From: Piromyces finnis finn
Taxonomy: Eukaryota; Fungi; Neocallimastigomycota
DNA: 64,000 bases
Assembly (NCBI GenBank): GCA_002104945.1
Contig: MCFH01000001.1
Location: 248,001-312,000 of the forward strand
Reading direction: 5' to 3'
The stretch's first letter is position 1; every line of letters starts with the position of its first letter. The notes beneath the pieces were generated by a model, which saw only the letters and a program-made list of their open reading frames with translations, was not told the origin of the DNA and ran no database searches. This document shows positions 2,050 through 12,431 of the stretch, piece by piece. Position numbers and translations under genes: made by a program.

Positions 2050-4017
2050 TTAGTTTCTAGTTTTTTCTGGATTCCACCTTTTCATTCTTATTTCATAAAT
2101 TGAATATTCCTTTAAACAATTTACATAATCAAGATTTACATTATCTGGTATTACTACATAACAGTAAACGAGTTTCTGAAAGATATATACAATATATTAG
2201 TATTTAAATAATACTGCTATATTTAATTTACTTTTAATAATATTTAATTACCTTTAAAACTTGGTTACAAACTCTATTGGTGCAATTAATTTCATGAATT
2301 GATGGCATGTTTTCAACATAGTTATGTTGGTTATCTTGATTATTTATTACCGGTATAATTGAAACTGCATATCTAAATAGTAATTATATATATATATAAT
2401 TACTATTAATTATATTTAAATATTTATTTTATAATATACTTACTCTGAGTGAGAAAATGCTGGTCCTTTTTGATATAATACTATTATATTACATTATAAT
2501 AATTATTAATTAATATAATAATTGTATCGAAATAATAATAACAATAATAATTACCATAATCAACACCATATTTCAAACCCTCTTTTACAATCCAGCCTTG
2601 ACTTCGGTAATAGTGATAAACAACATATTTTAAAATAAATTGATCAGATGAATCACTAATATTGTTTCTAAATATTTTCCAACAATCATCAATACTTAAA
2701 ACCTTAAATATTGTTTTATATAGAAAAAAAAATATATATTAATAATCATGAATAATTAAAGATAATAAAAATACTATTTGCAAATTAATAGCATTATTGT
2801 TAATGAATATAATAATAAATGGATAAATATTATATATATAAATTTTGAATAATAATAATAAATAAATAAACATGAATTAAAAACAATAAATTATAGATGT
2901 TAATATACGAACTTTATGATTATCTCGAATGGAAATGCAATTTAAAGCATATTTCAAGAAAAAGGCTTCCTGTAAATCCAATTGTAAATATTCCATACTT
3001 TTTAAATCTGATGTTATAAAATTTTGCTTAGCTCTTTTTATTATGTAATGATTAATTTTCTGCTTCATTTCGCTCCAATAATAATGAGGTTTGACAATCA
3101 AATTAACAATATCTTGAAGTAAACATTGAATTAAAGAAAATCCAAACTTTGATAAATTAATTAACAATTGACTATTCCAATATCCACATTCTATAAGTTT
3201 TATTTTATATATATCCATCATTTATAATTTATCAATTATTTAAAATAAATATATTAATTAATAATTAAAATAAACACTAGAATGAAATATCAAAAATGAA
3301 TTACTTACCTTTTATTATTAAACCTTTTGTTTCAATTAATTTATTAATAAATAAAAAAGAACTACCTTTATTTTCATTTGATATTAATAGATTTCCCCTC
3401 CTTTTTTTTATTTGATTTTCAAAATTTTCATTATATATTCCAGAATGTTTTTTAATTATATCTTTAAGGATTCTCTCCGTCCAATTTGGTTCACTTCTTG
3501 ATAAATTTCCTTTTCCAAAAAAGCCATTATTCCAGCAAGTTCTTATTGAATTATGGTTTGATACGACAACACATGGTATACTATTTAAATTAGTATCAAA
3601 TTCACTATCTGAAAAGTTAGAGTTTTTTAAAAACATTAGTTCACCTCTAATAGGGCTGAAATAATGCCTTAATGAATTAGGAAAAAACTCATTAACGAAA
3701 TAATCCAATATTTTCTTTGTCCATATGTTATTTTTATAGCCTTGTCTTTTAATAGATTTTGAATCTTTTTTTCCACTTATATTTATATTCTTATTGATAG
3801 TATTTGAAATTATTAAATTAAATATTGGAAAAGGATTATAATACCTTTTCTTCTTTACATTTTTTTTGGAATTTGATTTTTTAATTTTTTCATTATATGA
3901 TTTACCTTTATGGTTTTTATTATTATTTAAATTTATTTTTCCATTACTTTTATTATTATTATTATTATTATTATTGTTTGTTGATAATACACTTTTTTTA
4001 TCTATTACTTTCTCCAT
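2050..4017 (-). CDS. SEN2: tRNA-splicing endonuclease catalytic subunit Sen2 (multi-exon; span given)
   Basis: Exons translate to CWNNGFFGKGNLSRSEPNW, EYLQLDLQEAFFLKYALNCI, YVVYHYYRSQGWIVKEGLKYGVDY, LLYQKGPAFSHSE and a terminal RMKRWNPEKTRN*. These are hallmark Sen2 motifs, including the catalytic Tyr/His. Exons are linked by GT-AG introns. Confidence 0.9.
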
Positions 4018-7349: not shown

Positions 7350-10300
7350 TTAAAACCAAACTGGATTATCTGGTGAAATTCCAGCATTTTCATCACCAGC
7401 TAATATATTTTCTATATTTTTAATTGAATATAAATTTAATAAATAGGTGTTTTAATAAATTAGTATTTTCATATTCTCATATTTATTTTAGATTTTATTA
7501 ATCAAAATATTATAAGGATATTTACTTGATTTAATTAACTCATCAAATATGTAATTAAGACTATCATTATTTTCTTGTAAGAATTTATTAGCTTCTTCAG
7601 TAGCACTTAATTTATCTTTGTTCATATTCTACATAATAAAATAATAATATGAAATAAAAATATTAAATAAAAATTTTTTTAAATACTGAAACTGATTTAT
7701 ATTTATTTTTTTTTTAAAAATAAGGACATACTTGATCATTTGTAACTATTTTTTTTGCTAAATTTAATTGTTCATCGTGTTCTTGTTTTTTTTGCTCATA
7801 AAACTTTTTGATTTTTAATATTTTTTCTGTTCTTCTAATTGTTTTTCAATCTTTTCTTTATATTCAATTTGTTCTTTCTGTAATTGTAATAATTTTTTTA
7901 ATTCATTTTCATATTTCATTTTTTTCTCTAATAAAGCCATACAAGCTTTTTTGTCATCAAGATTATCTAAATTTATATCATCTATATCATCTATATCATC
8001 ATCATTATTATCCAACAATGATGATTCTTTACTACAATCCTTATTCTCATCTTTTAAAATGGAAAGATTTTCTTGAATATTACTGTTGTTATCCTTATTG
8101 TTATTGTCATTATTATTACTATTATTATTATTGTTGTTGTTGAATTTATTATTTTTTAATGTATAATCAAGTTCACTATATAATTGATCATATATGTTTT
8201 CTGAAATAACATTTTTCTTATTTTTTAATAACATATTGTTACAGCACTTTTCCTTTTTTTCGACATTATTGTCATTTAAACTTTCTTTATCATTTTTTTT
8301 AATAGTATCATTTTCAGAATTATTAGTTGAATAAATATTTTCGATTGTTTCATAATTATCGTTATTAGGCATAGTCATATTTTGTGTATTTTCATTTTCA
8401 CTAATTCCATCATCGTATACTAAATTTTCAATTAATAATAAAATTTTCTGCCATTGAGTTTCATTTTCGATTTTATTACATAATCTAAATAATTGTAATA
8501 AGAAGTATGGATATTTTTCATTCTTGGATATTAAATTAGAAACTTCATTGTAAATTCTTTCACTAACTTTGCTATTTAGTCTTTAAAAATACATATGATA
8601 TAGTAATAAAAATTAAATTTTATTTTTTGAAATCATATTTTATGGAATAATATTATTATATTAACAAAAACTATAATATCTATAATTACATATTATTAAT
8701 ATTGATGTAACATTGAGAGAGTTGTATAGAAGAATTATCTGAATTCATTCTTTCAATTCTTTTCTCTTCTCTAAAACAATTAAATAAATAAATTTTAATT
8801 TTATGATATTTTTTATTTTTATATTACTAATAATATATTATTTACTTATTAACCGAATTTTCTTTCTTGACATTATATGAATGATTTCCAGATTCAGATA
8901 TTTTCCTCATAGCTGTTATCAATATCAAAAATATTAATTTGTATTAGAATAATACTACTTATATTTAATATAAAAGTAAAATAATAAAATAATAATAATA
9001 ATAATAATAATAACCTTCGATGGCTTCCTTTATATGAATATCGATTGATTCTTTATTATTTGTGTTATCATTATCAGCACGTTCTTCTTCGATAATCGAG
9101 TTATCATTAATAAATTTATCAATATTTTTTTCCTCCATTTCTAACGATACAGATTGAGACTTTAATATTTTTCTTAATGAATTTTGTCTTTTCTCTAATT
9201 CTTCTAATTTATCAAATAATTCTTGACTTTCTTTGTCAATATTATCGATATATGATAGATTGTATTTATTATTTTCCTTTAGTTTGCTGCCATTTGATTC
9301 AATTCTATTATTTGGCTTAGTTATTTCATAGCTGGAATAAATATCTTCTAAATCATCATCATTCATATTCTTATCATCAGTTTTTCCAATATTTTCTTGA
9401 GTTAATTTATCATCATCTTTTTCCTCCTTTTCTATTGTAACTAATGTTTTTGAGGTTTCTTTATTATTTGATAATTCTTCATTATTACTGATGTTATTTG
9501 ATAATTCTTTTGAAGGTAATAAATCGATGCTAGGAATTTCACCTTTTTTATTACTATCAATAATACTACTACATTTTTGATTAACAGTATTTGCATATTC
9601 TTTCAAATAATCCATGTATTCTCTAAGTTTTTTTAATTCTTCCTGTTTTTTATTTATTTCCATTAATTTTACAAATATATCATTATCAATATCATCATTA
9701 GATTCATTATTAGCGTTATTATTTATCAGTTTTTCATTAATATTATTAGATTCTTCAATTAAAATATCTTGCAATAAATTACTAAGACGATCTTCATCTG
9801 AATAGTCATCTTTTTTAGTTATAGTATCTTCACTTAATTTTTTCTTATTCTTATCATTGTTTTCATCACCATCTTTTTCGAGTTCATTTTCACTCTCATT
9901 ATCATTATATTCATCATCACTATCACTAGATGAACTGTCATTGGATTCATCCTTACATTCTTTTTGTTGCTTAATTAAACTTTCTTGAGCATCTTGTAAA
10001 CGTTTCAATTTTTTCTTCAATTGAACTAATGAATTTTGTTTTTTCTCTAAGTTATATAAATAGTTTAATATATTAAACTCTTCGTCATTATAATTATTCA
10101 TTTCGTCTTCGTCTTCATCACTTTCATCGTCGATGTTACTGTCATTATTGATATCATCATTAATATCTTTCTGACTTTCAAATTCATCATCATCATTATT
10201 ATTATTACAACTATCGAAATTTTTTACTTCTGAAGAATTATATAAACTTAATAAAGCTTCGCTATTATTAAATATATATTTTAATAATTCATTATTAATC

Positions 10301-11824
10301 TGGTCTTCATCTTGTTCATTAATGTCAATATCAGATGTATCTTTTAAATCATTATTGCTTGATTTTATTGTTTGGACAGAATTGGAAATTTCTACATCCT
10401 TATTATTGTTAATCCTATATGCATTTTCAATATCTGATTCTTTTCTTATTTCATCATCTATAATATATAAAATAAAAAAGTTAGATAATGATAAATATTT
10501 ATAATATTTAAATTATAAACTTTTTTTACCATTATTATCTTTAGTTTTTTCATCATCAATAACATTATTATTATTATTTTGTTCTTTAATATCATTTAAA
10601 TTTGTAAAAACAATAGAATTATCATTATCAATAACATCATTTTCATTTTCATTAATAGAATTCTTTTCTTTTTCTTCAACCTTCTTTTCATGATTTGTCA
10701 ATAGTTTATTCATTGCTTCCCGTAAATTAAATAATTGTTCTTGTTGATTTTCTTTATATTATTTATATTAATTTAAAAGTAACAATTAGCTATATTAATT
10801 ATATTTTCTTTATATTTATTTATAACTCCTACTAAAATAAATTAAATACCTGTTTTCTTTTCAATTCCATTCTTAAACTTGTTGATATATATGCAAGAAT
10901 AATGAATGATATATAAAATATTTAATTACGATAATATTTTAAATATATTAATTACATATTAAATAGTTTGAGTAACTATACCTTATTATCTTTATTTAAC
11001 TCATGTTCAGATTCAATATCAGATTCTATAAATGCATATGGTTTTGAAAATTGTATATTTTCATCATTATCTTCACTATCAGAACTTTCATATTCATCAA
11101 ACTCATCACTATCTTCATCACTTTGAATTGGTGGTTTAGAAGTAGCTTTAACTAAATTGTTAGTATCTTTAATTTTTAATTCAATGAATCCATCTGATGA
11201 AGAAGTATTTTTTGTATTTTTCATTATATTTTCAATATCCTAAAATAACAAAAATATTTATTTTAATAAACATTATATATCTAAAATAAAAAAAATAAAA
11301 AAAAAATAAAATAAAAAAAAAAAAACTATATTATAATAAAAAGAAAAAAAAATTATTTAATACGTTTTTTGAATTATTAAGACGAATATTTTCATTTTTA
11401 TTTAATATTTCTTGTTGTTCCTTGAAAATTTTTTTATTTTTTAAGTTACCTTTTTTTTTTTAAATATATATACATTATTATCAAATAAAATATAATGTTA
11501 TGGAATTATGAAAAAGACTTTTTTATAAATTAAATAATATAAATAAGAGATGTCAATTAAATTACTTGTATTCATGATAGGGATCTGAGTTGGAATAATA
11601 ATTGATTTTTCTTTGTCTTTATTTTTAGAGTCATTTTTCTCTTGATTCAAATTTAATTTCTCATTTTTCATAGTGTTAGTTACGTTGGAGTTACTTGAAG
11701 AGCCAATATCAATAACCTCTTCATCTACCTTGCTTGTTGTAACTTCATTCTCTTCAGTCTCCTGATTAGTATTACTACTAATCTCATTTTGATTATTATC
11801 TGTTATTATTTGTTTTAAGTTCAT
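7350..11824 (-). CDS. large acidic/coiled-coil protein with a PCM1-like conserved motif (multi-exon)
   Basis: ORF pieces 11498-11824, 10976-11224, 10513-10713, 8965-10101 and 7815-8378 join through GT-AG introns and end in KNILAGDENAGISPDNPVWF*. The exon at ~8400-8582 reads LNSKVSERIYNEVSNLISKNEKYPYFLLQLFRLCNKIENETQWQKILLLIENLV, resembling metazoan PCM1 as I recall it. Confidence 0.75.
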
Positions 11825-12431
11825 TTTTATGTAAAACAACTAATTTTATAACTAATAAAAATTTTTAAAAGTTAACAGTTTTCAAAAAAATAAAATTTTT
11901 AAATATAAATTAATTTTATAAAAATTAATTTATTTTTAAAGTTTTTCTTTTAATTAAAATTTCAAAATTAAAAAAAATTTAATTAGACAAAATTTAAGAT
12001 ACTTAAAATGTATAAAAGTTAAAAAAAGAACATTAATACAAAAGAATGAATGGTATTAACTTTTTTTTTTCTTCAAGTTTTATATATTTTAAGAATTCTA
12101 AGTATATCTATTATTTTATATAAATGAATATATAATATAATAGTAAATAATTAAGAAAAATGAAATTTTAAAATTTGTTACTATTGAAAAAGCCAGCCAA
12201 TCTTACCTGAAAAAAATAAATTTATTTGCCTACCTTATTTTATACAGAAAAGAGTTTTTTTTTTTTCATAAAATATTTAAATTAATAAAGGGTTATGTTA
12301 TTTTGATGTTAATTAAATTATAATAAAATTTAATTACCATCATTACACCACAATAATTCTTTAAAGGAAACCTAAATTTTATATAAAAATTTATATAAAA
12401 TTGATTTATTTTTATATGAAAGGAATTAAAA

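Follow-up and report, generated by a model that had tools for sequence, protein, structure and literature searches.

Does Piromyces finnis, an anaerobic gut fungus that builds flagellated zoospores, keep PCM1, the scaffold protein of centriolar satellites? The question is raised by one exon in a stretch of 64,000 nucleotides (nt) of its genome (GenBank assembly GCA_002104945.1, contig MCFH01000001.1, positions 248,001 to 312,000 of the forward strand), which we call the window and whose first letter is position 1 in all coordinates below. A preliminary description, made from the letters of the window, had seen in this minus-strand exon a peptide resembling part of human PCM1. Our analysis suggests that the gene to which the exon belongs, at 7350-11824 on the minus strand, is very probably the single-copy P. 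finnis orthologue of PCM1. The motif exon encodes the one part of PCM1 that is recognisable from fungi to animals, namely the module of ~65 residues that opens the Pfam family PCM1_C, and the rest of the protein is long, acidic, of low complexity and helical, and has diverged beyond recognition.

The PCM1-like motif

Three features are needed to follow the searches:

7350 to 11824, minus strand: whole gene, public model ORX60758.1 / BCR36DRAFT_578842 (P0001 in our searches), 1091 amino acids (aa), 12 exons
7818 to 8580, minus strand: motif exon as one continuous open frame, with a stop after it at 7815-7817
8418 to 8564, minus strand: conserved PCM1 signature motif, P0001 residues ~821-869, placed by the Pfam match and a gap-free alignment

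The peptide quoted in the preliminary description is present exactly, in a minus-strand frame of 255 open codons running from 8582 to 7818. An AG acceptor at 8582-8581 precedes the exon proper, which begins at 8580 with the base that finishes a codon split with the preceding exon, and residues I824 to V869 of P0001 correspond to window positions 8555 to 8418. At the local base composition, stops are expected to make up 11% of codons, so that an open frame of 255 codons (chance probability ~8e-14) and the neighbouring one of 515 codons (~3e-27) are both far beyond what random sequence would give.

We searched 1.84 billion representative proteins with 74 residues of the exon (window 8358-8579, minus strand; phmmer, expectation value E<=1e-3). 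The search returned 16 matches: P0001 itself, which is 100% identical to the query and is deposited as a hypothetical protein of Piromyces finnis, two close relatives (P0002 and P0003, 72% and 60% identical to the query), one repeat-noise protein and twelve others. The twelve others had library-wide E-values of 7.6e-6 to 7e-4. In ten of them Pfam PCM1_C scores above its cut-off, with 42-114 bits and always at profile positions ~5-75, and the remaining two fall slightly short of it (26.6 and 21.8 bits). Searching in this reciprocal direction, from the fungal exon outwards, returned PCM1_C-type proteins and no second family with the module, and the resemblance noticed in the preliminary description lies well outside chance. 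Two of the matches, P0007 and P0009 (114 and 92 bits to PCM1_C), carry nearly the string that the preliminary description gave for human PCM1. Another, KAJ3089265.1 (P0012, 1677 aa) from the chytrid Quaeritorhiza haematococci, is a full-length protein with the motif at 1431-1496, and it passes the Pfam cut-off. The named fungal matches are all zoosporic (Piromyces, Pecoramyces, Quaeritorhiza), and most of the matches are metagenome fragments; for the absence of PCM1 from Dikarya we rely on PMC12094185.

The repeat-noise protein, P0004, is a 484-aa tandem-repeat protein whose E of 1.4e-6 was built up from six short stretches. This false positive indicates that repeats can inflate library-wide E-values. 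The two matches below the cut-off are exon-sized open reading frames (ORFs) with the PCM1-type module on eukaryotic metagenome contigs, at L002:6001-6459 (P0006; 108 kb) and L003:509-1255 (P0005; 34.6 kb / 1.7 kb). P0006 scores 21.8 bits and P0005 26.6 bits to PCM1_C, and P0005 groups with the chytrid sequence in the motif tree described below.

Profile comparisons pointed to the same family. The Pfam profile PF15717 (PCM1_C) has 628 positions and a gathering score of 27.4 bits. It was the top family, and the only plausible one, for the 80-aa piece P0001:806-885 (22.5 bits, E 5.6e-5), and a six-frame search of the whole 56-Mb genome with it gave one candidate, minus-strand positions 8358-8564 (16.2 bits, E 0.12). 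In the ESM Atlas, the three clusters ranked highest by a feature search are all PCM1_C (0.89, 0.88 and 0.77). An alignment of the motif across 15-16 sequences is free of gaps; Y, I, P, L and F are the same in all of them, and E in nearly all. When six fungal-like sequences were compared with nine PCM1_C-positive ones by hhalign, the two sets aligned over 65 gap-free columns (probability 99.3%, E 1.3e-20), and a hidden Markov model (HMM) built from the nine PCM1_C-positive fragments matched only the motif frame among 1702 window ORFs (57 bits); both sets had been chosen by their likeness to the query, which makes these two comparisons partly circular, takes weight from the case for PCM1 and leaves them as consistency checks only. 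With phmmer, Pfam, hhalign and the ESM Atlas concurring on the PCM1-like motif, and with its alignment gap-free as first proposed, homology between the motif and the start of PCM1_C is supported.

The motif may also be a structural unit. AlphaFold2, supplied with the 15-sequence alignment, predicted helices at 4-29, 34-46 and 50-66 of P0001:806-885 with a mean predicted local distance difference test score (pLDDT) of 77 and a core at ~90, and in this model the motif and the residues just before it are predicted to form a three-helix unit. A Foldseek search of the three-helix model against the PDB gave nothing meaningful (best E 2.1), which is usual for such a small helical unit.

The gene and its public model

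The other features of the gene are as follows; the exon boundaries come from mapping the public protein onto the window frame by frame and are accurate to ~2 nt:

~11824-11558, 11441-11364, 11239-10982, 10877-10851, 10752-10531 and 10458-9016, minus strand: P0001 exons 1-6
~8913-8845, 8769-8692, 8580-8017, 7834-7732, 7628-7527 and 7409-7350, minus strand: P0001 exons 7-12
9016 to 10458, minus strand: largest exon, 481 codons inside a 515-codon open frame
7835 to 8016, minus strand: stretch of 182 nt called an intron in the public model, probably coding
7821 to 7826, minus strand: run of six A (A6) just ahead of the stop at 7815-7817

The locus lies on contig 1 (2.6 Mb) of a 56.46-Mb genome in 232 contigs. 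The window is extremely AT-rich (GC 15-30%), and the introns of P0001 are short, AT-rich and of the GT-AG type. The protein has an isoelectric point (pI) of 4.48, with 22% D+E and 18% N, and the largest exon encodes an acidic middle region rich in N, D, E and K that contains K/E/L-rich strings. Four sequencing runs of one organism, from three studies, contained 0.65-0.69 of the words sampled from 7400-11900, a stretch whose exonic share is 0.73, which would fit spliced transcripts; the type of the runs was guessed, and we take this as a hint and no evidence of expression.

Comparison with relatives suggests that the public model is wrong at the end of the motif exon. By splicing from 8017 to 7834, the model drops 182 nt (8016-7835) and moves into another frame. 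One of the three K/E/L-rich strings quoted in the preliminary description lies in sequence that the model splices out. The open frame of the motif exon continues past 8017, first through an acidic linker and then through a K/E/Q-rich helix, until the stop at 7815-7817. About 60 codons of 8016-7835 have conserved, in-frame counterparts in P0002, P0003 and P0017, a protein of Pecoramyces ruminantium, all of which read through and run straight on into a peptide that is encoded in the window one base out of frame; P0002 is a single uninterrupted ORF of 271 codons across the whole exon. Past the A6 run at 7821-7826, the shifted frame matches the continuation of P0002 and P0017. At the A6 run, the assembly thus probably has the wrong homopolymer length, unless the frameshift is real, and the annotation pipeline probably bridged the shift with a false intron at 8016-7835. 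If the intron is false, the true P. finnis protein would be ~60 residues longer than ORX60758.1, and this matters to users of the public protein, from which ~60 conserved residues would be absent.

The downstream neighbour, at window 2880-4017 on the minus strand, is made up of two ORFs, the first 238 and the second 114 aa long. The 114-aa ORF weakly resembles the N-terminal domain of tRNA intron endonuclease (17.8 bits, E 0.0023, below cut-off), and by this likeness the neighbour may be a gene for a tRNA-splicing endonuclease subunit.

Orthology and its alternatives

Is the whole gene an orthologue of PCM1, or does it share with PCM1 only the motif? The motif is single-copy in the P. finnis genome. 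The Pecoramyces protein P0017 (799 aa) aligns collinearly with both halves of P0001 (44-46% identity). A maximum-likelihood tree of the motif groups the three anaerobic-fungus sequences in one supported clade (96/93) and sets the nine PCM1_C-positive sequences apart from them across a branch with 92/95 support. The genome also encodes SAS-6_N, a family of the centriole cartwheel (75 bits). A search of the genome for ADIP, the SSX2IP/Msd1 family related to satellites, stayed below the cut-off and matched prokaryote controls too, and we did not use it. Residues ~275-636 of P0001 (window ~10458-9400, minus strand), in the acidic middle, have no counterpart in the Pecoramyces model P0017, from which most of the largest exon is missing; either only one lineage has this region, or the Pecoramyces model is short of exons.

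Several observations weigh against orthology. The fungal piece does not reach the gathering score of PCM1_C (22.5 bits for the 80-aa piece and 16.2 bits in the genome search, against 27.4). When the whole 254-aa exon or the whole of P0001 was scanned with hmmscan, PCM1_C was not listed, and the same was true of the whole of P0017; this is presumably due to HMMER filters reacting to the biased flanks, since the 80-aa piece alone does match PCM1_C. Only ~60-65 of the 628 PCM1_C positions are detectable, all at the start of the profile, with no match beyond position 79 to positions ~80-628 in either the genome search or the Pfam scans. BLASTP of P0001 against the chytrid protein KAJ3089265.1 found nothing similar outside the motif, the N-terminal region included. 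On the coiled coils that the preliminary description had read into the protein, a crude heptad score was uninformative, as it did not separate P0001 from its shuffled versions; the acidic character and the three K/E/L-rich strings, which look helical, are indeed there. Moreover, a 2026 survey of 184 fungal proteomes, that of P. finnis among them, recovered PCM1 exclusively from Chytridiomycota (PMC13358043) and described pericentriolar-material and satellite modules as markedly reduced in Neocallimastigomycota. That negative comes from an orthogroup pipeline, and the P. finnis locus and its Pecoramyces orthologue contradict it as far as PCM1 is concerned. The case for orthology of the whole protein is thus built from the sequence of one short module, its single copy and collinearity within fungi, and because nothing beyond the ~65-residue motif is detectably similar, we can only infer whole-protein orthology and a role in satellites.

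Much of this could be accounted for if the ~65-residue module were a mobile interaction unit that had come to lie in an otherwise unrelated acidic protein, in which case P. finnis would have domain-level homology to PCM1 and no orthologue of it at this locus. The lack of similarity to the chytrid protein outside the motif, the ~550 PCM1_C positions that went undetected and the shorter length of the fungal protein (1091 vs 1677 aa in the chytrid) all fit such an arrangement. We nevertheless regard it as unlikely, considering that in the exhaustive search every informative match is of the PCM1_C type and no other family bears the module, and that there is a single copy per genome. The chytrid protein, although it scores above the cut-off, is likewise limited to PCM1_C positions 6-71, and the literature gives the same pattern for accepted orthologues such as insect Combover. 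Distant PCM1 orthologues therefore normally match in the motif only, as seen in the chytrid protein and in insect PCM1.

Two other explanations appear far less probable. Chance resemblance might be expected in a compositionally biased, helix-prone protein (18% N, 22% D+E), particularly as one of the 16 matches is plain repeat noise and the Pfam score is under the cut-off. At the same time, the motif itself is not of low complexity, its gap-free alignment keeps Y, I, P, L and F invariant, E-values fall to 7.6e-6 against 1.84e9 proteins, and 12 of the 13 matches that are neither P0001 nor its close kin belong to one family; with a Pfam E of 5.6e-5 as well, chance is very hard to credit, and the exhaustive search and the Pfam scan of the 80-aa piece effectively refute it. 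Acquisition of the gene or exon from an animal host, or contamination of the assembly, would have some plausibility in anaerobic gut fungi, which live in animals and are known for horizontal gene transfer (PMC13358043). The motif exon, however, shares the extreme AT content of the genome, and the gene around it has many exons, separated by short AT-rich introns of the GT-AG type, and sits on a contig of 2.6 Mb. The closest relatives of the exon come from other anaerobic fungi (60-75% identity), and the motif falls outside the PCM1_C-positive group in the tree, whose topology gives no sign of a recent transfer from an animal. The tree, the AT-rich codons and the short GT-AG introns together leave no room for contamination or for recent transfer from the host, and this origin, effectively refuted by composition, gene structure, relatives and tree, is extremely improbable.

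Proposed role and comparison with known PCM1 proteins

If the gene is the PCM1 orthologue that we believe it to be, animal PCM1 offers a model of what it might do. By this analogy, the acidic helical remainder of the protein would drive self-assembly into cytoplasmic granules, and the granules would gather proteins of the centriole and flagellum or, as proposed in PMC12094185, aid their translation. For an equally conserved partner, the module would be the most probable place to dock or assemble. The activity of the granules would be needed as zoospores form and the sporangium makes their basal bodies and flagella. A broader proposition is that the Neocallimastigomycota keep PCM1 and that the ~65-residue module is the sole element common to all opisthokonts; we consider the odds of this to be about even. 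If it is true, the module would be the ancestral functional core of the satellite scaffold, and the remainder would be a replaceable spacer that forms condensates.

The identification itself is correct and largely known. P0001 already stands in UniRef100 (A0A1Y1VMW2) as 'Pericentriolar material 1 protein C-terminal domain-containing protein', and Pachinger et al. 2025 (PMC12094185) reported that orthologues of PCM1 occur throughout the opisthokonts, choanoflagellates and ciliated fungi (chytrids and Blastocladiales) among them, found no orthologue in higher fungi and argued that the origin is opisthokont-wide. Allomyces macrogynus KNE68704 and Batrachochytrium dendrobatidis OAJ39354 are entries of their Table S1, in which Neocallimastigomycota do not appear. 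The suggestion that satellites have an older opisthokont origin is a reasonable one that our results support, and it had been published before; the only new element is the lineage, which the UniRef name had foreshadowed. Anaerobic gut fungi would be added to the lineages that keep PCM1, and the recent negative report would be corrected in this respect. The locus lends support to the published idea of a satellite scaffold that goes back to the opisthokont ancestor and follows the occurrence of centrioles and flagella, and the overall picture of the field is unchanged. In addition, a single short module that can fold stands out as the core conserved in a fast-evolving scaffold, and as a target for mutagenesis and partner screens.

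Like vertebrate PCM1, the fungal protein is long, largely helical or disordered and encoded by a single gene, and it has the module I-Y-x-E-V...L-I-S-x-N-E-x-x-P-x-F-L-x-x-L-F at the start of PCM1_C. Unlike vertebrate PCM1, it is about half as long and falls under the Pfam cut-off, and neither its N-terminal region nor the remaining ~550 PCM1_C positions are detectably similar. The resemblance to Drosophila Combover (CMB) lies in the manner of divergence: insect PCM1 is similar to its human counterpart largely within the conserved C-terminal part of pfam15717 (PMC12094185), and in both cases a highly divergent protein has its likeness mostly in that part and requires intermediates or profiles to be recognised. 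Combover, unlike the fungal protein, is backed by experiments (foci, centrosomal and ciliary phenotypes, and a proximity interactome). The PCM1 orthologues of chytrids and Allomyces share its lineage context, since like the P. finnis protein they belong to flagellated fungi. The chytrid motif scores above the Pfam cut-off (42-49.5 bits), whereas that of Neocallimastigomycota scores below it (22-23 bits); at the same time, in Quaeritorhiza KAJ3089265.1, as in P. finnis, the motif is the only match to PCM1_C, and the two motifs are 40% identical over 53 residues.

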